From Oopsacas minuta (Eukaryota; Animalia; Porifera), in NCBI GenBank assembly GCA_024704765.1, contig JAKMXF010000099.1, positions 798,846 through 862,845 of the forward strand: a stretch of DNA of 64,000 bases. Reading direction: 5' to 3'. Position 1 is the stretch's first letter. Each line of letters opens with the position of its first letter. The notes under the pieces were generated by a model that searched no databases, was not told the origin of the DNA, and saw only the letters and a program-made list of their open reading frames with translations. Of the stretch, positions 1 to 58,797 are shown one piece after another. The translations under genes were made by a program, and so were the position numbers.

Positions 1-346
1 TATTAGCCGAACATAAGACAACCTCATTATTTCGAATAAATGACAACATGTAAATTCGAACAAATACTGCGCCCCCGCTTGAAGCTGGCATGTCAAAAGT
101 CTTAAGCCCAAGTCCGGATTAGGCCCCACTTCCGAACAACGATGAAATTTGAAGTAAATTTGTTGATTATCTATCATTTTGTGGAGACTATAGATCCGTC
201 ATATGTGACGCTTGTGGCATATGATTCACCAACAGTAACTTTGATAGGCTCAAAACCCATTGTGTGACCCTCGTACAAGCATTATGAGCCACTACAGATA
301 AGAGATAACTACGGTATAATACGTTTGCCAAATTTGGTTTTGTACA

Positions 347-1960
347 GCATGAACTTCCAAACTACCTGGACAGTCAAATCGTGTCAACTCATATTGATTC
401 TATACCAAGTTAGGCCAGTGTGTTATAATTCATATCACGAAAACCATTAGTTCTATTGTGATTAATATATTATTGTTGGATAAGATGTCAAGTATGGTGA
501 TTTCATTGGTCACATATACCAATATGACGAATAAAATTCACAAAGTTTGCGGTTTTCACATCTTTTGTTACTTCCCAATAAGGATATCTATAAGTAGCGG
601 CAAAATTAATAGTACCTTTAGCCCGAATAAATATGTTAATTGTTTCAACAATTCACATAATCTATCTATAAGGTATAGTATACTCCACTTAATTTGAGCC
701 GCTGGTTAATCGGGTCACTTGGCCAGAAACAAAAACCATGCAAATAGTCTTAATTTTCTAGGGTAAATAGGACAAACACCTTTATTCCGCTTTATCGGGT
801 CAAAATTGCCTAGTCCCGATGTAACCATATTAAGCAGTCTACTGTATTTCCATGTCGAAATGACGTCATCTAGTGGCTTTCTTAGCAAATATCAACAAAA
901 GAGTCCTGAACTAGATTTACATTGCATAATTTATTCGATTGGATCTAAGGCTATTCTCATGATAAAAACAATATCTGTTTGATCATTTTTTCCATGTTCC
1001 AGTTATAGTTGCAACCATGGCTCTCACATTTTTGCAGATATTCGCAAAAAATTTGACAATGTTTGATTTTAAGATCAAATTGTCTGAGAAACAAGTAGTA
1101 TATATAGTAGACCCACACTAATCTGAATCCTCAACATGTACCATAAGGTAATGAGAAATTGGGTACATATTATAATCGGCAATAGTAAGTTTTGGAATAT
1201 CATTGAGGGTTTTCAACTTATAAATGGATATTGACAAATTATTACTATCCATGGTCACTATTATAACTCAAAAACACCAATTTTTAATAAGTTTTACATA
1301 AGCATCTTTACATCATTTCGTACATTATCTTTGAAATCAAAGATGCGATATTTAACGTTCTACATCTCATCCAGATTGGGCCATTTTCTCTAAATACTGC
1401 TTATTAAGTGAAGAAATTGGCACATTTTGAAAATTTTTTGTTTTTTGATTTGTAGACATGATATTCTACAAATTAGTAGTACTTATACATGAGCATAAAA
1501 GTACTATTTGTGCTTTATAAACCATTCTATAAACACTACTATATCACTAGTCCAAAAATTCGAGTTTGATGGTGGGTATTATATAGAAGAGGCTATGGTA
1601 TTATCAAGGTAAGGGAAAGGGTATATACTACATGTTTTCCATACGATTTGATCATAACAATAATGATTGTCAAGTTTTCGGTCAATATCAGAAAAATAAT
1701 ACAATTTTGATATTTTGCATGAAATTAGCCTTAGTTCCCATTGAATAAATTATGCAATCGTAAATGTATTTATTGAATCTTGACAGAGTTTTAGAAATTG
1801 TATAAATAGTCAATTAATAGGGTCATTTTGTTGACATTCTCCAAGTAAGCAATCAATCAGATGATGTCATTTCGACTTGGAAATAGTTTACAGAGATAGA
1901 TTGTGTGTATTGTGGTATAGGGCCAAGTGAGTTGACTGTCCAAGTTTAGAAATCCATGCA
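347..1960. mobile_element. Old diverged foldback/non-autonomous DNA element
   Basis: TATTTCCATGTCGAAATGACGTCATCT (845-871) is the inverse of 1859-1885. Further patchy inverted similarity links about 347-410 with 1905-1960. A small MITE (676-844) sits inside the left arm. Confidence 0.45.
676..844. mobile_element. pogo/Tigger-like MITE
   Basis: Right end CATATTAAGCAGTCTACTG+TA; degenerate left end TA+TAGTATACTCCACTTAAT. Carries the TTAATCGGG motif also seen in the MITE at 53026. Confidence 0.5.
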
Positions 1961-2929: not shown

Positions 2930-5900
2930 TCAGTAAATTTTCACAGGTTTCGATGATTGGGAGAAACGAGCTTTATTTCCTGTTCGACACTTAACCTTTA
3001 GTTTCAATCCACTTGGGCAAATAGGAACAATCTTTGTATCTGCTTTGTTAAAATCATTTCTCCGTTTAACTACGATGTTTTCATGCTCTTTCAATAAAGA
3101 TTCTTTAAATGAAGAAGCAAAATTGCACCATAATTCGAAGAAGTTAAAAGTGTCAGTATCACTCCAGACATCCTTAACCTCACCATAAAAATAATATATG
3201 AGTTCTTGATATGCTTTTTCGCCCACTTTCCATATTTCGATCTCATTTGCAATTTTTCGCTCCGCAAATAGAAAAAATTTCTCAACAAATTCTACAAATT
3301 TGTTTGGGCTCACTTGGTTATTATCTTCTAAAAAATGGCGAGTATTCTCTCGAACCTTTGTGAGTTGTTTTCCTAAGTTATTGAGTGCTTCATATAACTC
3401 TTTTAAAGTGATTTTAGAAGCAATAAATAAATCCCCTGTATCAGGAAAGGGCAAGATATTTATGATGGAGCCTTGTAAAATATTATGTTCGAATGTTTGA
3501 AGATAGCATCGAGAAACAAAATCCAGGAAGGTACAAGAATTATCACCCGCCTTAGTTTCCTTTAATCGAGGCAATAACTCTAAATTAAACCCTACAGCTT
3601 CACTGAAAGAATCATAAGTTTGGTTCATATAATTTCCAAGAACCAGAATTATTGATAACAAAGTTCTCAACTCATGGCTATTTTTAAGCTTTGAACAACA
3701 GCTATTAATAGTATTTAAGTTTCTGTGAATATGTTGAATGTCCTCTTCAAAGTTTTGCATATATAGAATATGTTGAAATCGCATATTAACATGAGGAATA
3801 TCACGAAAGAACTTAATTGTTTTACTCTCATTCGACAATTCAACATTTGGAAATTGAGAAAGGTGAGTGTCCACTAAACTAATCCATTCATCAGTTACCA
3901 ATTTACACAAACTCTCTAATATTGATGTTGTTATATTCGATGTCTTAATATCCCAGAATATAGCATTTCGGCGATGTCCTCAAGGTGAATATCCACACTT
4001 TGTATATTCTTAAAAATTACCCCAACTTGTCTAGATATGTTGGGAGGCAAGATTTCCTCCACTGTAGTAGAATGACTTTTAAGATTAGTCATAGATTTAA
4101 AATTCTTCCGACTCTTGTGTTTGGAAAAAAGTTCCTCAAATAAAGTTAATTCAATTGATTTAATTTTTGGCTTCGGTAGACTCCTCCAAATTATCTCAAA
4201 TTTATTCTTTCGTCCAGGGAGACATAAACGTTTCCAATGGAGGGGCTTCATCATAGTTTGCTTTTTATTAAGTTTCAGTGTTTGAAACATGCAAGTTGAT
4301 AATTCTGTATGATTCATAAAGGTTTTGCTCAGATCCTGTAAATCAGGAAGGTTCGGAGGAGGAGGTGGGATAGACTTTAACATAACTTCTGGCAGATCCG
4401 GTGGGGGAGGAGGACAAATTAAGGTGAAATATTTTGAAGATGAAAAGTTCCCTATAGAATCTTCGTGATTATCAACCAAATTGTGATTACTTTCACTTTT
4501 CGAGAATTCTCCAACGGTATCTTTAGGACTGACATTGAACTGTGAATTTAGAACGGACAACCTAGTAGGTAATGAAATAACTCTATGTACCTTCGGATGA
4601 TGACAGATTTCTTGTTGCAGACTAGATGTACAAGTTGTACGGTTCTCAAATGTCATAATATTGACTTTTTTAAGCAAATCATTATTTGTTTCAAGTAATG
4701 CGCTTAAGCGAGACTTGTAGTCATTGATTACATGCTGTATCTCTTTTCGCTCAAGTGCATGTCTTTGAGCAATAGAATGTGAGGTCTTCTCAAATATGTG
4801 TGAAGAAATTAAATATGCAGCAGTTACTGCATCTTTCACGTCTATTGTATGTTTAATCCAATTTTGAAGATCATTTCTGGCGAAAGAAAGTGGGGTATTA
4901 TCATTCAAACTCAAAAAATTGTTAGGATCAGATAATTGAGAGTATTCTATATGAGAATTGTACAAATTAACTGAATTACTAATGAGAGATTTATCTGTAA
5001 CGAAATTTGTCAACGATTCTGTATTAGAGTTATCAATATTAGGATCAACAGTGATTTCCGGAAGAATTGATATTGGAATGACAGGATCAAGGTAATTGGA
5101 AGGCTGGCATTTACTATTTGGAATATCTGTAATAAATAAATTCGGAGTATTATCATTATTCCCGAGTGGCAAATTGGCTTTGAATGTGGGCAAGGACTCG
5201 TTGACATTTGTTTTAATATTTTTCCGATGTTCCAATTTAGTAGCTTGTGTAGAGATATTTTGGGATGAAGTAGAATTAATATTTATTGTATTTTGATCGT
5301 TTGTTAAATTATTTCGTTTAAGTATATTTTCTTGCTTACTCAGAGTTTTATGAGAACTACGAGTAGAACATTTAGCTCCGTCAAAAGCGTCAATATCTAA
5401 ACAATCACTAACTGAATTATCAATTCCACAATCTCTTGGGTTATCTATTTCATTCAAATGTTGCACCTGAGCTTTCGTTTGCTTATAGTGACAATCTAAG
5501 TTATTCGTCTTACAGCCTTTTAGTGCAGCATTAATATGAACATCTGATGAGAGTTGTGAAAAGTCCATTTTTTCTGGAACGAAAATCCTTGTTTGACTTT
5601 TAGTACGGTTAGATGAGACAATTGGATTGGGACTGTGCAATCTTTTAATACCGATTGTAGATTTTGAGATACTTGTAGCATTTATTGAATCCATAATAGT
5701 ATTCACGTTTAGAGCGCTTCCCCTGATTTTATCATTTGGTAAAGAAATATCACTGATATTATTAACTGTTTTAACATTTTGATGAGTTTGAAAAGGAAAT
5801 CCATCCTTAGCCGATGCTTCATTAAGCGATGAATTCGTTTTTAGCTTTATTTGATGAAAAGATCGTATTGTAGAAGAGCCTTGTAAATGTTCCGATCTAG

Positions 5901-6693
5901 AAGGAACTGGATATCTAGTTTGACGATTAGATAGTGGTTTATAAATATTTTTAGCTTTCTTATTTGTAAAAGAAAAGTTTTCAGATTTCTCAAGTTGGCT
6001 GGAAACAGGATTGATACTGATATTGGATTGAACTTTCTCAATTGGAAATATTCTAGGATTGGTTTGGGTATGAATATCGGGGTGAGGACTATCATTAAGA
6101 TTAATTCTTGACGTTGAGGTATTTCTAAACTGAACATTTGTTTTAGGTTTCTCTGAAAATATACCAGATGCTTCTTTTGGCTTGCATATGAGATCAGTTT
6201 TATGAATAGAATCTTCCCGAATATTAAATGTAGAGCTATTAAATACAGAAGGTAAAGGAATAGTCTTACCAATAGAATTATTCATATCAGGTGTATCTGT
6301 ATATTTTGTTGAAGAACGCAAATTTGATTGACAAGAAGTCGCCACATAAAATGTAGCTTTATCTGTTTCTATGCATGGTTGCAGGGATTTAGATTTATTA
6401 TTAGAATTGATGCCTCCAGGTGAAACACAATCAACAGTGACCTTGGCATGTGAAAGTTGTATCACATTGGTATCATTAGGTCGAATTTCTGTTTCAAATG
6501 AATTACCATTCTCATTGTTCTCCATATATTGATTTTGAAACAATCTAGCACGAACTGTATCTTTTGAATTCGAGTTAGATTCATGAATAGCAGGTTTAGA
6601 GATATTTTTCTCTTCAAAACGTTGTATTCGTTGAAAAACCGGTAGTGAATCATTAAATTTCGTTGAACTCCGAATTTCAAATCTTCGATTCAT
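2930..6693 (-). CDS. Formin, FMN1/2-cappuccino type, with one frameshift near 3950
   Basis: Long S/N-rich N-terminus, coiled coil (QRHALERKEIQHVINDYKSRL), short FH1 (CPPPPPDLP..IPPPPPNLP). FH2 motifs MKPLHW, LVLGNYMN, LLPRLKETK and FMN-like PFPDTGDLFIASKITL. C-terminal SGLKLKV resembles the FSI tail. ATG at 6693 directly follows an acceptor TTATTTACAG. ORFs 3931-6720 and 2930-3910 join by a -1 shift. Confidence 0.85.
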
Positions 6694-8199
6694 CTGTAAA
6701 TAACAAAGAAATAAGTACAAGTAATTCAGTTCGCAGAATATTAAGACTCCCTACTATGAACAATATTTTTGGTACCATAGTGCTCAATCCGATTCGGAAT
6801 TAGCGAACCTGACTGTATTCTCAAAAATTGTAAAGCCTAGAGTGGGAGTTAGAGTTCGAACCAGGGCGTCCGAGTTGGGTTGAGAATCCATCCCAACACG
6901 AAACCGATACGCAATCAAACTCTAAGGTCTGACGATATACAGTCAATAATGGTATACCCTTATGAATGTCTAATCTCAGGCTGGGTGAGCAGTTGCTTAA
7001 CATCTATAACTTGGCCAAATACCGTGATTTTCATCATACAGATATATTATGCATATTTAGTAATGGTTTCTTACGAAAACAGAAGATGAAATCATGTATC
7101 TGTTAGAAATATGTGACAATAGAAAGAAAGTTAGGAAACGGAGGGGCACGATCTAGCAAAATGGTGTGAAATGCCATTTAGAGGGCGGATATGTGTAAAC
7201 TAGACAATCACCCAACGGGCATCAAATATGGGGTGAGAGGCTGAGGTAAGGTCTAGGGTGATCATTGTCAATATTTTTGCAAAAATTTTGAAAATGTTCA
7301 AGTTGTGATTGGTCCAATTTGTGTCGAGTTTATACTACAAAATTTGTAGATTGTCTATGTTTAGAATTTGGCTAGTTATTTTCTCCCGTTGAGGCCCCCA
7401 CCTTTAGATAACTATATTTTGTAGTATCTTTGCTAATGTAGTTAATTAAGGACTGTTCGGAGAAAGTTGACGAGAAAAATAGGATTTTGTCGATAAATTT
7501 ATACTGCATTCAGTTTACTCATAAAATTTCCCAGTGGGAAATATCGCAAAAATAGTTTGTTGTTACTCTATTGAGCACTATACTAAGATTGAGATATCTA
7601 GTATTCATAATTCCTATCATCTTTTCTATTTAAAGTCACCTCCGGACTAGATGGAAAAACTTAGTTGCAAAAGGAAAACTAAGTCAATACTAAAATATAC
7701 AAAAGTTTTCCTTTGTGAATTACCAAATTAGTTCTTTGTAATTAAATATTTCAAGAAATTAAGGAAAACTTAATTTGAATTAGTTTCTGTTAACAACTAA
7801 GTAAATACAAGTATTTGCGTAGTTTGGCAATACTTATGTATAGGTAGTAAATGAAGTCAGTAAATGGTTGAAATCTTAAGGACTGGGAATGTAGCATATA
7901 TAAAAGTTCCTTCAGAAATCATACTTTTAGGAATGAGTAGTATTTGTTTGCCTCTAGGTGTTGTCTTCCAATTTAATGAATATTTATAGCAGAGCGAATT
8001 TTACTATTACTTTATTGGACATTTTTAATAAAGCAATAGCAAAATATATGTTATGGATCTAAACCATGGTCCAAATGCCAAATAAACGTATTAATTAACT
8101 GTATGTATCGGATTCCAAAATTTTTGGTCAAACAATATATATATTCACTAAATATGGTTGTAGTTTATTGTTAATGATGCTTCACGCTAAATGTACCTA

Positions 8200-23397: not shown

Positions 23398-26300
23398 TCA
23401 AAAATATAGTTTCTTCCTTAAATGACTAATATCCTCAGTACATTGTGAAAAAGTTTGAGATAGTAAAGAAACCCTGCGTCTGACTTCTGTCATTATGTGC
23501 AAAAATTCTTCATATCGACAATACTGTAATACTAAACAAAATGACTGAATGAATATCGAACCATGGGAAGTATGTCTGAATGATGAATATCGCTGCACAG
23601 TAGAATTTCCAATAAAAATATCAGAGAGGGCCGACAGATTTTCTGGTTCCTCATCAATAGATCCCGTTGGATTAAGCAAAATACGAAGTGGATGGATAGT
23701 CGGATGTAATTGTTCTTTTCCAGAAGTAGATATTTCACTATCTTCCCTCACTTGATTATTTTTCATTATGTTATTACCATACTCTGAAAAAAACATATAT
23801 TTTCGATGAGATAATTTATTTTCTCTAAGCTGAAATACTTCTATTTTAGACCCTCGACAGGCTTGAAGAATGAAAATCTTTGGTTTACCAGCTAAAGATT
23901 CACAGTAAATATTTGAAAATTCGGAGGTAATCTCATCTCGAGAAATTTTCTTTCCATCAGATAGCAAAATGTTGTCATCTTCGTCACCATGGGACATCAC
24001 AACACAAAAGAATGAATCATAAGAAGAATGGTCTAAACGAGCAATTTTTATAATCTCTTTCTTAAATTCTGCTTTAGTTAAGTTTTCTTTAGCAATGACA
24101 ACATATTGTAAATGTTCAAATGTGTCACGAAGTGATATGAGATCTAGTTTAGATCCTTTTCGAACTGATGCTTGATCAGTCGCAAATATTTCAATGTTCA
24201 CAAGAAATGCTATTCCGTGAGGATTTGAATTCATCCGATATCGATCATGATGAGGCTGTCTATCAATATTTTTGCTATTATGAAAGGTCAAAGGTGTTAT
24301 TAGTCCCTTACTGATATTCTTGTCAATTAAACTACGCAAAAACTGATGACCTGGGTTTCTATACTCTCTACATAGAACAACATACAATTTGACGGCCCAT
24401 AAGGGACCTTTATGAACTAATTCTTCCAGAAGATTAGCAGAATTTTCTACCTGAGAATAACCCTTGTTGTTTATAGCATAAATTCTTTCTGAACTAGCTA
24501 GGCCAAACTTATAGAGTAGAGGTGATAAGTCTTGGGAATTTATGTGCTGTATAAAGGTATCTTGATTATTGAAAATGAATTTTGCTATAGAAGTGTTATC
24601 ATAAAACTTGGTAATATAATCCAACAAAAAATCATTATCATTAAAAATGTGGTTCCAATTAATCTTACATTGTTTGTTGTAACACCATGATTCCCTAGCC
24701 CTAGAGTCCGTTAGCAACAATTGGTCCAAACAAATGCATGGATGCTCCATTCGATCCAAATCAGAAAGTCTGTCACAAGTACAATCTAATACAACTTTAG
24801 CCAAATTTCCACAAGGTATCAGTTTTCCCTGAATATCAATGATAAGCATCTGAAGAAAAATTAAGTAGTCCATTATCTCTGATTTATCATATTGATCTGC
24901 GTAAGGATTTTCTTGTTCCTCCAATGAGTTAATTTTGGAGAAATTAATTTGAATGTATGGTTTATCTATGCAAAATTCGATAGCAACCAGGAGAGAAGGA
25001 CAGACATAGAAAAAGGCACAGTCGAAGCCGAATATAGGAAGAGATAAGTTCTTTTCAACATTTCTACGGATGCAATAAGATAGGAGTGTAAAATAGAGGG
25101 ACGCGGGAATAAATCCGTCTGGGAAAAACAAGTAAAACGAAGAGAAAAATCGATGATTGGGTAGCAATGATACTAGTTTTTTTGAAGAAGTCGTGAAAAG
25201 ATAAGGAACGTAATAATAATTTGATAATCCTTCTTCAGATTGGCTATCAATCAAAATGCCGTATATTTTAAGTAAATCTAAAAGGGAATCTTTTAAAACC
25301 CTAAGATTGAGTGAATTTAAAATATATTCAAGCAAATTACATGACAATTTGGCCTCAGACTGGCAAATTCTCAGATCCCTAACTAAAATCTCGGTGTTTG
25401 TGTTGGTAAACCTTTCTAGAAGAGCACTACCATACTGCGGAGAAACAATATGATAAATAAGATCTAAAAATTTCTGAACGTCAGTTATAATTATTCCCTG
25501 CTTATAAAAGAAAAAACCAATATCGTGGAAAAGATGGAGAAAATATTCCAAATCTTTCAAACAACTGCAAGATTCAGCCAAAAAACATATTCGTCTGTGA
25601 TTTATAATTGGCAGCTCTTCTCGTAAAATAATATTTGCGAGCTCTATCCATTTAATAGGAATAGATTGCTGAAAAGCAATATGGTCAGAGAGTTGTTTAA
25701 CAATGTCTTTAAGTTTAGATATTCCAGATATGTAGGGAGATTCGGGTAGACAGCTTATCAAAAAAAGTCCATCATCTTCATGAACTAAACTGAAAGCATT
25801 ATTTCTTCTGTTCATGTGTGATCTTATAGTTTCTAAATGTTTCTCTGCTCGCTTTATAGGATTGATCACACAGTCAGATTTGCTGAATACGAAGATGATT
25901 TTAGCAGGTCTTTGGTAAATGTCATTCGATGCAGTTTTACTGACGGAAAATATGGCATTGAGCCAAAACTCAATAGCTTCCAAATAAGTAGTTGGCACAC
26001 CAATTTGTGATCTGAGAGTATGTCTGTCCATTCTCTCAGTCCTCACATTGATTGGGTTAGTAAGTTCATCAACTGATAAGTCTACCAGTAGTAAATAGAT
26101 AGCTCGGGGGGAAAGAAAGAGAGAATGAAAGCAATATAAATAATTCTGCCCTGCGAAATCCCATGCTGTTAGAAAGTTAGACTTTGATGATAGCTCGTCG
26201 GTTCCACGAAGTGTGGCATGAATTTTCTGGACTGGAATTGATTTGGCGAAATCTTTGGAGTTTTCTTCGAATAATGTCGGAGCAACAGCAGCGGAGTCCA

Positions 26301-28467
26301 CCTGAGAACCCAGATAATCGTCAAACTTTTCTTCAGTTAGTAGATTGAGCTCCTCTCCTCTAGGATTTAATGATGGTGATAGGAAGTGTTCTTGTGAATC
26401 AAAAATGTTGGAGGATTTTGAGTTGTCCGATTCTGGGATAAAGGTTTTGTGCTCTGAGAAAGAATGATTTCGTAAACAAAATTCATTTTGTAATTTCTTA
26501 TCATATTCTAAGTACTCTTGAGTCATGTACTTTACAGCCATATCTTGCCTGGTTTCCTCTAAATTATTAGTATATGTCATCAAGTCTTCTATCTGCTCCC
26601 AATCCTGAGAAATCTTATGCACCTGTAAATCGAATTTGTTTATAAATGGAGTACTTTCTTCGTCGATTTTGAAGGGTAAACCAGTTAGATTGCGCAGGAG
26701 AGAGGTCTTGCCTACTCCTTCAGGCCCTACTATCATCAAACGATAAAATCGAAAAGGTTCAGACCCTTCCAAACAAGCCATCATATACGCTCTTCTGAAT
26801 GCATCCCCTTCAATGTTTAAAATAGAAGAAAGATCTTTATTGGAACTAAAATTAAAACCTCCAACTAAACCATCAATGACCTGAATATATTCAGACTTGC
26901 GAGATTCTACTATTGAATCATATAATATGGTGTGTAACTCCGAAAAATAATTCTTTTGAATTGACAGAATAAAATTAGCTAGCAAAGATGAATTCGCGCC
27001 AGAAAGCGTCTTATCAATAGCGTGTACAATCATCATGTTTTTGTAATTGGTGGGGTAGGAGTATGTTGATGGTTGAAACTTTTTGACTGCTTCCGAATTA
27101 CAGTTGGAAACTAATTGGCTAAGAAAGATAGCTCTAGGAATATCAGGGAAGGAATTCGCAAGCTCGTTTGAGAAAATATTGACCTTAAGAGATGTTTTAT
27201 CATTTAAAGATACTTGATGCTGTTCAATATCACAAGTTAGAATGAGCACCACAACTAGACTACATTTTCCACATAGATTTTTGTTTTTATTGATAGTTTG
27301 TGTATAGCTGGATTTACCAACCAACAAAATATCCTGAGCAATTCTGAAGTTCATCAATTGAAACTCTATCTTAATATTTTCAATTAACTCTGGGATAAAA
27401 TTTAAATTGCTTTGTGTAAAATTTTCGTTTGTAAGAACCATGAATAGTCCTTGTGATGATGAGCTTGCAGTCACATCATCTTGGCCTTGAACATTGGCAT
27501 TTCTAGAAAGATAAATATATTGTCTAAGAGTATTTTGTATAAAAAATACATTATTCGCACCAGAGTAATGACTACATGATTCAAGGAATTGGTAGTAAGT
27601 ATCCCTGGTGTTGAGAAATAAATTGATTAATTGAGATTTCGATTGAGTTTTTCTTAGAGTTTCAAATAATGATACCACAGGCTGATGAGGTTTGATACCA
27701 GGAGAAAGTGAAGATTGATGAGATGATGAATAACAAAATAAGGTGTTTGTACAAATGTTCTTTTCTGGTGTTGGAGGGGAGTTTGCCTGGGAGATATAGT
27801 CAAAGAAGAGGAGAACTGGCATAGCAGCCTCTGAACTGACTAAAGATGCTATCTTGTTAATAAGAAATGTATGGGAGTAAACAGGATTGGAGTCTAGGCC
27901 TTCGTGGAATTTGTAACTGAGAATACCCCGAGAATCTTTAATAGAGACAGCCTGACCAATACAAAATACGACCAAACTGTTGAGAGACGGGGAAGAAGCA
28001 ATAGCTTCATCTATTAATAAGGGAAGTGCCTTATATTTAGACACATCATAAATTCCTGCTTTAACATTAGAAAACTTAAGTTTCTGATGATCTCGAATAT
28101 AAGCTGTGTCCAAAATTTTCACATTAAAATTCAGGAAAGTTAAAGTTTTCTCAATCTGCTTTGATTTGAGTCTCGCTTGGAGAAGATCAATCTCGCAGCT
28201 TTCAAATATAATTATCAAACAGAGACCACACTTTGCATTGTGCTGTGAAATATGAGGATTAGAGTTGAGTGCTTCAATTGATATTTGAAATTCATTTTCG
28301 TTAAAAGACTGAGTATAAGGGTTAGGGCTAGTTTTAGATTTTACAAAAGACACGGGTGTATCCATAACAATCAATTCTCCATCACTATCTGAGTCAAGAG
28401 GTGGAGTATTTGCTCCCGAAAGGCCAAGTTGTCTAAAATTCTCATCAGATATACTTTGTGAGGTCAT
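23398..28467 (-). CDS. ROCO protein: two pseudo-caspase domains, Roc GTPase, COR, CARD-like domain, active-site-intact caspase (1689 aa)
   Basis: Uninterrupted 5070-bp ORF. Roc G1 GPEGVGKT (26704-26727), G3 WDFAGQ (about 26146-26163), G4 FSKSD, then a COR-like region (IPIKWIEL, LFHDIGFFF, YYVPYL). CARD-like helices at about 24320-24600. Caspase motifs RKGS, VMSHG (23986-23997), KPKIFILQACRG (QACRG 23851-23865), SFRH..GSIFIQ, LRKKLYF. Two N-terminal caspase-fold-like units lack His/Cys. Confidence 0.92.
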   Translation of the reverse strand: MTSQSISDENFRQLGLSGANTPPLDSDSDGELIVMDTPVSFVKSKTSPNPYTQSFNENEFQISIEALNSNPHISQHNAKCGLCLIIIFESCEIDLLQARLKSKQIEKTLTFLNFNVKILDTAYIRDHQKLKFSNVKAGIYDVSKYKALPLLIDEAIASSPSLNSLVVFCIGQAVSIKDSRGILSYKFHEGLDSNPVYSHTFLINKIASLVSSEAAMPVLLFFDYISQANSPPTPEKNICTNTLFCYSSSHQSSLSPGIKPHQPVVSLFETLRKTQSKSQLINLFLNTRDTYYQFLESCSHYSGANNVFFIQNTLRQYIYLSRNANVQGQDDVTASSSSQGLFMVLTNENFTQSNLNFIPELIENIKIEFQLMNFRIAQDILLVGKSSYTQTINKNKNLCGKCSLVVVLILTCDIEQHQVSLNDKTSLKVNIFSNELANSFPDIPRAIFLSQLVSNCNSEAVKKFQPSTYSYPTNYKNMMIVHAIDKTLSGANSSLLANFILSIQKNYFSELHTILYDSIVESRKSEYIQVIDGLVGGFNFSSNKDLSSILNIEGDAFRRAYMMACLEGSEPFRFYRLMIVGPEGVGKTSLLRNLTGLPFKIDEESTPFINKFDLQVHKISQDWEQIEDLMTYTNNLEETRQDMAVKYMTQEYLEYDKKLQNEFCLRNHSFSEHKTFIPESDNSKSSNIFDSQEHFLSPSLNPRGEELNLLTEEKFDDYLGSQVDSAAVAPTLFEENSKDFAKSIPVQKIHATLRGTDELSSKSNFLTAWDFAGQNYLYCFHSLFLSPRAIYLLLVDLSVDELTNPINVRTERMDRHTLRSQIGVPTTYLEAIEFWLNAIFSVSKTASNDIYQRPAKIIFVFSKSDCVINPIKRAEKHLETIRSHMNRRNNAFSLVHEDDGLFLISCLPESPYISGISKLKDIVKQLSDHIAFQQSIPIKWIELANIILREELPIINHRRICFLAESCSCLKDLEYFLHLFHDIGFFFYKQGIIITDVQKFLDLIYHIVSPQYGSALLERFTNTNTEILVRDLRICQSEAKLSCNLLEYILNSLNLRVLKDSLLDLLKIYGILIDSQSEEGLSNYYYVPYLFTTSSKKLVSLLPNHRFFSSFYLFFPDGFIPASLYFTLLSYCIRRNVEKNLSLPIFGFDCAFFYVCPSLLVAIEFCIDKPYIQINFSKINSLEEQENPYADQYDKSEIMDYLIFLQMLIIDIQGKLIPCGNLAKVVLDCTCDRLSDLDRMEHPCICLDQLLLTDSRARESWCYNKQCKINWNHIFNDNDFLLDYITKFYDNTSIAKFIFNNQDTFIQHINSQDLSPLLYKFGLASSERIYAINNKGYSQVENSANLLEELVHKGPLWAVKLYVVLCREYRNPGHQFLRSLIDKNISKGLITPLTFHNSKNIDRQPHHDRYRMNSNPHGIAFLVNIEIFATDQASVRKGSKLDLISLRDTFEHLQYVVIAKENLTKAEFKKEIIKIARLDHSSYDSFFCVVMSHGDEDDNILLSDGKKISRDEITSEFSNIYCESLAGKPKIFILQACRGSKIEVFQLRENKLSHRKYMFFSEYGNNIMKNNQVREDSEISTSGKEQLHPTIHPLRILLNPTGSIDEEPENLSALSDIFIGNSTVQRYSSFRHTSHGSIFIQSFCLVLQYCRYEEFLHIMTEVRRRVSLLSQTFSQCTEDISHLRKKLYF

Positions 28468-56559: not shown

Positions 56560-58797
56560 CAGGGTTGGGTTTTGGACGGACAGTAGGAAAAAACCTGTTT
56601 TTACCGGCCAAAACTGGTCAAAACCGGGCAATACTGGTCAATTCTATACCCTTCAATATTAAGAATACATATATAACTTGTTGATATCTTATTTTGATTT
56701 GGTAATATACTATTGACACTGGCTTACAATGAAACTGTAAAGTGATCATAAAATGTGTGGTTTCAACCAATTAATATACAAGTAAAGTATTCGTACATAT
56801 ATATTTTCTAAACGGCTATAATTATCCAAAGTATTTGTGATATTATAGAAATTGAATACTATCGTGCAGATTGTATATGTACTTACTCAAATTGACCAGT
56901 TTGAAATGGCACAAGGAGGAAGGCCCATTGTTTCAGTATGGAAAATTTTCATCAAAGTTGAAGATGGTGGAAAAATACGAGCGAAGTGTGTAAAATGTAG
57001 TGCTATGATCAGCGCAAAGGCTGGGAGGCTTAGAACTCATCTTGAAAAATGCTCTCAAAGCGAACTCCAAAATAAATTTCGTAAAGACGACCTTCCTGAA
57101 ATATTAGTACCTTTTAACAGTAGTGGCTCACTATACCACCAGAAAAACGTGTATATCATAAGATCATTCAATCCAAGTTGAATGATTTCACAATAAAGAC
57201 CAGCTCTCACCAGAAAGAAATTCTCGACAATCAAATTGCTCGCTTATTTTATGCTTGTAATCTTCCGTTAAACCTCGCTGAGAATGACGTATTCAAAAAG
57301 GCAATTTTTATGCTTAGACTTGGTTATACACCTCCTACGAGGAAAAGTCTAGCTGGAGGTCTTCTTGACAAGATATTTAATGAAGTAACCACCATGACTG
57401 CTTCAGCTCTGGAAGGCAGGGATGTTTCTCTAGTACAGGATGGATGGAGTGACATACACAACTCCCCTGTAATTTCCCATTGTGTACATTCAGGAGAAAT
57501 ATCTTATTTTCTGATTTCTGTTGACGCTGGATCAAACAAGAAAATTGCTACTTATTGTACTTCTTTAGCTATCGAAGCGTCCAAAGAAGTAACTGATAAA
57601 TTTGGGTGTAAAGTTGTTGCTGTCGTTATTGACAATGAACAAAAAATGCAGTAAATGCGCTTAAAGTTGAAATTGCTTGACAGCTCACTTTCATTATACG
57701 GCTGTGCATCGCATTTATTGAACCTGTTGGGGAAGGATATCACCCCTTCGCAAATTATTTCTCATATTATAGAGATAATTAAATATTTTCGCAACCATCA
57801 CAATCCTGGAGCCCTCCTATCTACAAAAGGGATCCCTTAAGCCTCAATTACCAGTCGTGACACGATGGAATAGTCAATTGGAGGGTATCAAGACATGCCT
57901 GACAAATAGGCCTTTCCTTTTGAACATTCTGGCACAATATGAAGATGTTATCGACTTGTCTATTGTAAATCTAGCCAACAACGTTGGCCTTTATCGTGAG
58001 GCTAAAAATCTTTATGACCAACTCAAACCGATTGCAACATCATTGGACAAGTTACAAGGGGAAAAGTCTAACGTTCCAGATTCTTGCGAAGAGTGGAAGA
58101 AATTTTTTCCAGTTAAACGAGCTAAAAAGTCACCTAGGCAAAATTCAGAAACGATTCAAACAAGCAACCACAACTACTCACTTCCTAGCCAACATGATCA
58201 ATCCGAAGTACATGGGGCAGAGGCTTTCATGTGAACAACAGGAAGAAGCGAGGGATTTGCTTATTCAACTAAATGCTTCTCTTTTTTGCCGCAACTTTAT
58301 CAGTTTCAGGCAAAAGAAACACCATTTCCCGCATCTATATTTGAATGTACAGATGTATTAGATCCAGTAACTTGGTGGAAGGCCATTAAAAAATCGAAAA
58401 ACTTAGTAGCTCATGAGCTTTGTGGTATAGCTATCAATATATTAATCCTACCGTCAAGTTCCGCAAGTATTGAAAGGATTTTCTTGAATTTTGGTTTAAT
58501 TCAAACCGAACTACAGACAGATTGAGAATCGATAAAGCGAGCAAATTAGTAGCTTGTTACAGAGAATTGAGAGGATGTCAAGAATAAGAGTGGTAACGAA
58601 TATAGGTTAATTAAACATCAATGTATTGTCATATTTTTCTTACTATCAACAAGTATTTATTCAGCATATTAAATATACAAGTAACATGCATTAGCATTAC
58701 AATTAGATTTTGACCAGTTTTATCCAGTCAGGAGGTTTTGGACAGGACGGTTTTTACCACTATGGTTTTACCACATGAACAAAACCTGCCAATCCTG
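56560..58797 (+). mobile_element. Near full-length hAT transposon (BED finger, DUF659-like), defective
   Basis: Perfect 8-bp TSD GTCCAGAG; imperfect TIR CAGG(G/A)TTGG..GTTTTG. BED finger VWKIF..C..C..H..C, QDGWSD, VIDNE, GCASHLLNLL, TRWNS, LPSSSASIERIF. Stops and frameshifts. Confidence 0.93.

Follow-up and report, generated by a model that had tools for sequence, protein, structure and literature searches.

The window analysed here, 64,000 nucleotides of the Oopsacas minuta genome (contig JAKMXF010000099.1, positions 798,846 to 862,845), encodes on its reverse strand a protein of 1689 amino acids (aa) in which a Roc GTPase domain is combined with a C-terminal caspase, that is, a ROCO-caspase. 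The stretch under study, positions 26845-28233, corresponds to aa 79-541 of this uninterrupted open reading frame (ORF). Residues ~76-545 constitute a tandem duplication of a caspase domain (large-1, small-1, large-2, small-2, the first two forming unit 1 and the last two unit 2), and both copies lack the catalytic His-Cys dyad and the Asp-binding pocket. We consider it moderately probable that this module forms an interlocked, dead mock caspase dimer that serves as the non-catalytic input or regulatory head of the ROCO-caspase.

Two caspase units without catalytic residues

A first-pass annotation of this DNA had described two consecutive units following the caspase motif order between aa 79 and 541, and every motif that it quoted was found, in the order given: GLCLII (aa 81), LNFNV (aa 112), LVVFCIGQ (aa 165), PVLLFFDY (aa 217), LFCYSS (aa 243) and QNTLRQYIYL (aa 311) in unit 1, and GLFMVLTNENF (aa 340), F.LMNF (aa 369), LVVVLILTCD (aa 404) and PRAIFLSQL (aa 444) in unit 2. 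It had also stated that neither unit has the His-Cys dyad, which agrees with the alignment, as none of the 19 aligned homologues carries it at the catalytic columns. In unit 1, I170 and Q172 stand at the SHG position and I225 at that of the Cys; in unit 2, C412 occupies the His position (C, H, S, K or T in homologues) and L452 the Cys position (L, V or I). The dyad (SHG, QACxG) is present in the C-terminal domain of the same protein. Nor has the Asp-binding S1 substrate pocket been retained, an Arg/Gln/Arg set with one Arg after beta1, the Gln of QACxG and a second Arg in the loop of the small subunit: this second Arg is missing in unit 1 and in unit 2, and the survivors are Q451 in unit 2 and R99 (Arg or Lys) in unit 1 of the close orthologues. 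Judged by alignment columns and by predicted structure, the module is a caspase-like domain devoid of catalytic residues, as is characteristic of cFLIP.

Evidence for caspase ancestry comes from comparisons between profiles with hhalign, for which the units were cut from a full-length alignment of 14 sequences. Unit 2 could be aligned over its whole length with the real caspase domain of the family (probability 90-93%; expectation value (E) 1.5e-6 in the local and 5.7e-8 in the global comparison), with T-C-D opposite S-H-G, S-Q-L opposite Q-A-C and DGL..F.F opposite the C-terminal L.KKLYF, and the two units also align with each other (E 1.9e-4 local, 4.6e-7 global). With profiles of six rows, the hhalign alignments were congruent but not significant and a search of PDB sequences gave no match; in BLASTP, neither unit was significantly similar to the gene's own caspase or to the other unit. 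When an 11-row profile of the module, including a paralogue from contig C88 of the same genome, was run against 177,635 PDB sequences, all 18 matches were caspases (E 0.03-0.7, with E up to 10 listed), and large-1, small-1 and large-2 each aligned to the corresponding part of caspase-3 or of an ancestral caspase. The language-model features of the ESM Atlas point in the same direction, 24 of the 30 nearest clusters being Peptidase_C14. By these sequence comparisons, the resemblance of the module to caspases is beyond chance.

The C88 paralogue provides a further link. Its residues 174-647 align to the whole module (probability 95.8%, E 7e-9), and its unit 1 reads FVCVVIGSSD in the place of SHG and LPKLFFFNSL in that of QAC. 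This unit reaches E 8e-4 against Pfam Peptidase_C14 (19.6 bits, under the cut-off of 21.4 bits) and E 0.11 against the p17 subunit of caspase-3 in phmmer, and BLASTP against p20 segments of true caspases gives E 9e-8 to 3e-6 in a small local database. The paralogue's own C-terminal caspase (E 9e-8) and the p20 part of the window protein's caspase (30% identity over 90 aa, E 3e-6) are among these matches. Unit 1 of C88 is, as far as its sequence indicates, a less decayed copy and a bridge from unit 1 of the window protein to true caspases.

Predicted structure and pairing of the module

The structure of the module was predicted with AlphaFold2 from an alignment of 19 homologues (model residue n being protein residue n+65), with a mean predicted local distance difference test (pLDDT) of 79.2 and a predicted template modelling score (pTM) of 0.83. 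In agreement with the first-pass annotation, which had proposed a pair of caspase folds, the model contains two complete caspase-haemoglobinase folds rather than a non-caspase fold or a single domain. The succession beta1-alpha1-beta2-alpha2-beta3-alpha3-beta4, then beta5-alpha4-alpha5-beta6, occurs twice, and the predicted six-stranded sheets, with a four-strand large and a two-strand small part, are those of the clan CD caspase-haemoglobinase fold. A first run with six orthologues had reached a pLDDT of 48; its strands and helices ran through the caspase order two times, caspases were among its matches, and KaiC matches (template modelling score ~0.15) were discarded as spurious two-domain alignments.

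The way in which known structures superpose on the 19-homologue model is informative about how the four pieces combine. With VIA-align, ordinary caspases (-7, -8, -6, -3 and -9) match at Z 16.6-17.6 over 183-199 residues with a root-mean-square deviation (rmsd) of 2.8-3.2 A, and the matched residues lie within model residues 11..477, a range made up of large-1 (aa ~76-231) and small-2 (aa ~475-543). Caspase-2 in its circularly permuted form, with the small subunit placed ahead of the large one (PMC7760212), superposes on model residues 166/167..391, the stretch of small-1 and large-2, with 199-204 residues aligned at Z 16.7-16.8. Foldseek alignments, which keep sequence order, give an rmsd of 17-19 A to ordinary caspases versus 5.5-6.4 A to the permuted caspase, a difference that agrees with crosswise pairing, as that pairing predicts.

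In a structural search of 48,161 representative chains, the top 15 matches were all clan-CD proteins, with Z scores of 16.8 for permuted caspase-2, 15.8 for caspase-4, 14.5 for MALT1, 13.5-13.9 for legumain, 12-13 for metacaspases, 12.8 for PIGK and 12.5 for a CHAT protease; below them came von Willebrand factor A (vWA) and flavodoxin-like folds, at Z ~8 or less. These values bear on the idea that the module is no caspase at all but a generic Rossmann-like alpha/beta fold (TIR, vWA or flavodoxin) with caspase motifs arisen by chance. The sequence of the module taken by itself, in which neither BLASTP nor Pfam brings out a significant resemblance to caspases, would allow for such an origin. However, caspases score at Z 16-17.6 against ~7-8 for vWA and flavodoxin-like folds, and profile and transitive sequence links lead to true caspases, so that we regard a non-caspase origin as extremely improbable.

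According to the model, the chain probably folds as two bodies, one formed by large-1 and small-2 and the other by small-1 and large-2. As the two crossing connections are short and the pTM is 0.83, both bodies would be packed together in the geometry of a caspase dimer in cis, and that the module forms a pseudo-dimer of some kind is, on the same model, quite likely. The first-pass annotation had suggested that the tandem pair could mimic a caspase dimer in cis; the dimer-like arrangement is upheld by the pTM and by the crosswise pairing, but the folded bodies do not coincide with the two consecutive sequence units. Caspase structures show one large subunit ending close to where the small subunit of the other monomer begins. 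The end of a caspase small subunit is, in turn, near the start of its own large subunit (PMC7760212), and with these two proximities a crossed connectivity is natural. The loop that crosses from large-1 to small-1 (~ISQ.NSPP.PE.N) has a fixed length family-wide, several positions that are invariant among orthologues, and a pLDDT of 68-81, whereas the other two linkers are variable and modelled with low confidence.

Several observations weigh against this interpretation. The crosswise topology depends on one confident model, judged from its confidence scores, its secondary structure and its structural matches; the alignment under that model is shallow (19 rows), and the beta6-beta6 interface is not directly seen. 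The six-row model (pLDDT 48) paired large-2 with small-2, i.e., uncrossed, and linkers of ~16 and ~24 residues suit either connectivity. Regarding ancestry, the alignment of unit 1 with the caspase profile is collinear but not significant (hhalign, E 0.16), and Pfam (PF00656) finds no match in aa 1-560, or in each unit alone, at E up to 10. Despite this lack of a PF00656 match, homology of the module sequence to family C14 is supported by profile comparison.

Homologues, paralogues and layout of the gene

A word-based search retrieved five orthologues that are 48-55% identical in the N-terminal part and all carry Roc and Peptidase_C14. A profile search of 1.84 billion representative proteins gave 18 matches in all, among which are nine more distant long proteins with 23-32% identity; with the profile of the N-terminal module, no ordinary caspase was reached in the same database, and a word-based protein search with the 14-row alignment added nothing further. 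Pfam found Roc and Peptidase_C14 in five of six homologues from this search, the sixth (P0013, 999 aa) having Roc only, and both domains are present in every full-length homologue scanned. The close orthologues lie on large, gene-poor contigs of ENA metagenome assemblies, and we infer that they come from other glass sponges. In one sample, an orthologue and a distant paralogue occur together with similar coverage, and one homologue is on a transcript-like Logan contig of 5.7 kb. Orthologue P0003 (L005:3001-8021) was called as two ORFs, one of 1550 aa and a 116-aa Peptidase_C14 piece, so its caspase is interrupted by a frameshift, by an assembly error or by real decay.

The O. minuta genome contains two further ROCO-caspases, on contigs C88 and C299 (Table 1). 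Searches of this genome with the module found only the window gene until the C88 sequence joined the profile, and with it included no third matching locus appeared. The C299 paralogue has a NACHT domain where the module would stand, in keeping with an N-terminal position that serves for input or assembly; its CARD-caspase sits in a separate, adjoining ORF (6138-7262), with an intron, a frameshift or an assembly error between the two. A tandem Peptidase_C14 pair on contig C266 was considered as another instance of the same design and rejected, as it consists of two separate genes, each with SHG and a Cys. These adjoining caspase-like genes (L011:1175-4158, forward strand) keep SHG and have N-K-C-R for Q-A-C-R-G, and the second one ends in a long Ser/Pro/Asn-rich repeat tail. 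A six-frame scan of the genome with Pfam Peptidase_C14 gave 46 matches above the cut-off, with a dense cluster on contig C288; the caspase repertoire is large for a 61-Mb genome.

The orthologues also indicate how strongly the module is maintained. The ratio of nonsynonymous to synonymous substitution rates (dN/dS) in the two least diverged pairs, pairwise values being saturated for more distant ones, is 0.26-0.28 in the module, 0.13-0.16 in Roc-COR and 0.12-0.19 in the caspase. With 47-68% identity against 76-85% in Roc and caspase, the module is, by these sequence measures, the fastest-evolving folded part of the protein, constrained and yet about twice as relaxed as the enzymatic domains. 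Decayed duplicates kept just as a spacer or folding stabiliser, an inert relic in other words, would account for the loss of the catalytic and pocket residues and for a drift past Pfam detection. Such a relic is very unlikely, since the module is under purifying selection, persists in all full-length homologues, even where identity falls to 23-31%, as well as in two paralogues of this genome, and has a highly conserved loop between large-1 and small-1.

The positions of the module and of the remaining domains are given in Table 1. One or more exons may lie upstream of the 1689-aa ORF. In the N-terminal tail, the motifs TPP and then K.KTSPNP (28318-28407, reverse strand; aa 21-50) are invariant in six orthologues and could be a proline-directed phosphorylation or docking site. 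An IEGD cleavage site before Roc was dropped because it is not conserved in orthologues. Pfam reports Roc as two stretches because a poorly conserved insert of ~105 aa (aa 651-755; 26203-26517, reverse strand; 24% identity among orthologues) splits the domain; its P-loop, GPEGVGKT, and a DFAGQ motif are invariant in the orthologue alignment. The Pfam scan detects no COR in the window protein, and COR-A is matched below threshold in homologue P0007 (24 bits, the cut-off being 35.3) and in the C88 paralogue (19.5 bits). The CARD-like stretch had no usable ESM Atlas match. In the live caspase, a long and variable intersubunit linker (23593-23832, reverse strand; aa 1546-1625) contains, directly before the small subunit, a conserved L-S-x-x-S-D that is plausible as a self-processing site.

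Table 1. Features of the window ROCO-caspase and of its two paralogues in O. minuta (window positions unless a contig is named; identities are among orthologues)
Feature	Position	Strand	Basis
Whole single-exon ORF, 1689 aa: tail, tandem dead caspase module, Roc, COR-like, CARD-like, caspase	23398..28467	-	ORF list; translation; Pfam Roc and Peptidase_C14; five orthologues with 59-63% identity and the same Pfam domains
N-terminal tail, aa 1-75, probably disordered, with conserved TPP and KSKTSPNP motifs	28243..28467	-	T21 P22 P23 and K43 K45 T46-P50 invariant in six orthologues; pLDDT <50 at aa 66-78, the only modelled part of the tail
L1 (large-1), p20-like large-subunit piece of unit 1, aa 76-231, beta1-beta4; C-I-G-Q for SHG, D-Y-I for QAC	27775..28242	-	Model residues 11-166; caspase p20 chains align at 5..166; whole caspases over 11..477, 183-199 residues; 47% identity
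S1 (small-1), p10-like small-subunit piece of unit 1, aa 232-315, beta5, two helices, beta6	27523..27774	-	Model residues 167-250; with L2 matches circularly permuted caspase-2, Z 16.7-16.8 over 199-204 residues; profile matches caspase-3 residues 215-275; 47% identity
S1-to-L2 linker, aa 316-338, poorly conserved	27454..27522	-	29% mean identity; pLDDT <50 at model residues 261-270
L2 (large-2), p20-like piece of unit 2, aa 339-456; T-C-D for SHG, S-Q-L for QAC; best-conserved module part	27100..27453	-	hhalign against the family's own caspase, E 1.5e-6; 68% identity; model residues 272-391
S2 (small-2), p10-like piece of unit 2, aa 475-545; terminal DGL..F.F strand, counterpart of the caspase C-terminal L.KKLYF strand	26833..27045	-	hhalign; model residues ~410-478 complete the L1 globule; 52% identity
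Roc GTPase, aa 570-900	25768..26760	-	Pfam PF08477, E 3e-11, above cut-off, in two stretches; 76-81% identity in the Roc halves
COR-like region, aa 901-1265	24673..25767	-	66% identity; length fits COR
CARD-like domain, aa ~1296-1385	24313..24582	-	hhalign comparison with the CARD that Pfam confirms in the C299 paralogue, probability 89%, E 2.2e-6
Intact caspase domain, aa 1406-1689, with SHG and QACRG	23401..24252	-	Pfam PF00656, E 2.1e-44 (aa 1418-1688); motifs in translation; 77-85% identity
C88 paralogue, 1936-aa ORF: ~165-aa low-complexity tail, tandem dead caspase module, Roc, sub-threshold COR-A match, caspase	Contig C88, L009:701-6508	+	
C299 paralogue: NACHT in N-terminal position, Pfam CARD before caspase	Contig C299, L010:1999-7262	+	Pfam

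The window as a whole has just six ORFs of at least 150 aa in the ORF list, which marks it as eukaryotic, and its G+C content is 32-40%; the published O. minuta genome comprises 365 scaffolds and ~61 Mb at 36% G+C (PMC10280926). Two adjoining long ORFs of 326 and 929 aa lie at 2930-6720 on the reverse strand; the 326-aa ORF is a formin FH2 domain (Pfam E 1.7e-40), and the pair are probably exons of one formin gene, not a transposon. At 57178-57654 on the forward strand, a 158-aa ORF matches DUF659 (E 7e-10), a domain that we take to be linked to hAT-type transposases.

Possible role and comparison with known systems

Pseudo-caspases are known chiefly from cFLIP, and ROCO proteins chiefly from LRRK2 and DAPK1, whose input arms are made of repeats. 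CARD-caspases are activated by induced proximity. The first-pass annotation had placed the module where ROCO proteins normally carry sensor repeats, and this is indeed its position, N-terminal to the Pfam Roc domain; in AP-GTPase/COR proteins, the N-terminal repeats are described as the sensor arm (PMC8195603). Papers on ROCO proteins describe Roc-COR modules as dimerising via COR and cycling with the nucleotide state.

On this basis, the mechanism that we favour would run as follows. Large-1 and small-2 would make up a split caspase, small-1 and large-2 would be nested within it as a natural "reverse caspase", and the module as a whole would be an intramolecular mock caspase dimer. It would act as a non-catalytic protein-binding input or as an autoinhibitory head, the state of which may be relayed via the Roc-COR switch to the proximity-driven dimerisation and activation of the C-terminal CARD-caspase. 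The output is assigned to a CARD-caspase because the CARD-like domain aligns with the CARD of the C299 paralogue. Given the loss of the Arg/Gln/Arg pocket, sensing of Asp-containing peptides is unlikely.

Alternatively, the module could be a built-in partner of the cFLIP type, in which one dead unit pairs via its beta-6 edge with the C-terminal caspase of its own or of a partner chain, activating or restraining it. A precedent exists in cFLIP(L), a pseudo-caspase that acts by heterodimerising with caspase-8 (PMC7586951); furthermore, a real caspase is present in every full-length member of the family, and the gene's own caspase has its closest relative in unit 2. Nevertheless, in the confident model (pTM 0.83, crosswise) the two dead units close upon one another, with no free beta-6 edge predicted. 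Were its dimer edges taken up internally, the module would probably not engage in edge-to-edge pairing with a real caspase as cFLIP does. In addition, there are two dead units here where cFLIP needs one, and Pfam finds no death-fold domain, such as a DED, upstream of the module. We consequently regard such a partner as unlikely. The comparison with cFLIP(L) is useful in any case, since both are caspase folds without catalysis, kept as regulators beside a death-fold or caspase pathway. cFLIP(L), however, consists of tandem DEDs and one dead caspase domain on a separate chain that heterodimerises with caspase-8, while in the window protein a single chain combines a Roc-COR switch and a live CARD-caspase with two dead domains that are predicted to pair mutually.

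A third proposal, to which we assign a rather low probability, is that of an integrated decoy: the mock dimer would lure proteins with which microbes or viruses bind or modify the caspases of their host, and such a protein, once captured, would flip Roc-COR and fire the CARD-caspase of the same chain. The location of the module in the sensor position, the conservation of a caspase shape with its chemistry lost, and the faster evolution described above speak for a decoy, and structures have been solved in which caspases are bound to bacterial effectors (among the PDB matches are CopC and a complex of caspase-9 with an effector). By contrast, gene-wide positive selection is not seen, pairwise dN/dS being well below 1; there is no known ligand, and the module has not conserved the substrate pocket, at which many inhibitors are aimed.

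The reading as a mock caspase dimer that acts as an input head can also be compared with other systems. The body formed by small-1 and large-2 shares the small-before-large order of the engineered, circularly permuted caspase cpCasp2 (PDB 8vp4, 9c2y; PMC7760212), on which it superposes well (see above); cpCasp2 is man-made and constitutively active, whereas the module is natural, dead and, according to the model, nested in a second, split caspase fold. The gingipain catalytic domain, the subdomain A of which is described as similar to B (PMC4626109), likewise has two caspase-like alpha/beta bodies per polypeptide, and one of the gingipain bodies is non-catalytic; the structural match of the module to Kgp is weak (Z 7.3 in the 48,161-chain search). 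The dead body packs on the live one in gingipain and separase, while in the module both packed bodies are dead and the live caspase is ~870 residues downstream. Separase has its two caspase-like bodies in one polypeptide as a pair of pseudo-protease and active protease domains (PPD/APD). ROCO proteins such as LRRK2, DAPK1, MASL1 and bacterial AP-GTPase/COR proteins share with the window protein an N-terminal input arm, Roc followed by COR (or a COR-like region) and a C-terminal output, but use leucine-rich repeat (LRR), ankyrin or armadillo arms and kinase or death-domain outputs in place of a dead caspase pair and a CARD-caspase. Finally, in NTPase-centred conflict systems of bacteria, inactive caspase domains have been proposed to bind peptides or to regulate in a dominant-negative manner (Kaur et al. 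2020, PMC7159879). Like the module, these are catalytically dead caspase domains attached to an NTP-dependent switch; however, they are bacterial, single and located in the effector positions of vWA-MoxR systems, and not a tandem interlocked pair on an animal ROCO-caspase. In the literature searched, which covered ROCO with caspase and Porifera, pseudo- or tandem caspases and natural reverse or swapped caspases, we found no description of such a design.

The protein carries three caspase folds per chain, two dead and one live, with a GTPase switch between them. If the proposed arrangement is correct, evolution would have reached the subunit rearrangement that engineers use for single-chain caspases, and the protein would be a compact system for the study of how a dimer-shaped pseudoenzyme controls a protease activated by dimerisation. 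If the decoy proposal were true, it would be an animal counterpart of the integrated decoys of plant nucleotide-binding leucine-rich repeat (NLR) proteins, built on a GTPase instead of a STAND ATPase. The family enlarges the big and unusual set of cell-death genes of glass sponges, an early branch of the animals, and is relevant to the question of how modules of death and immune signalling first came together.

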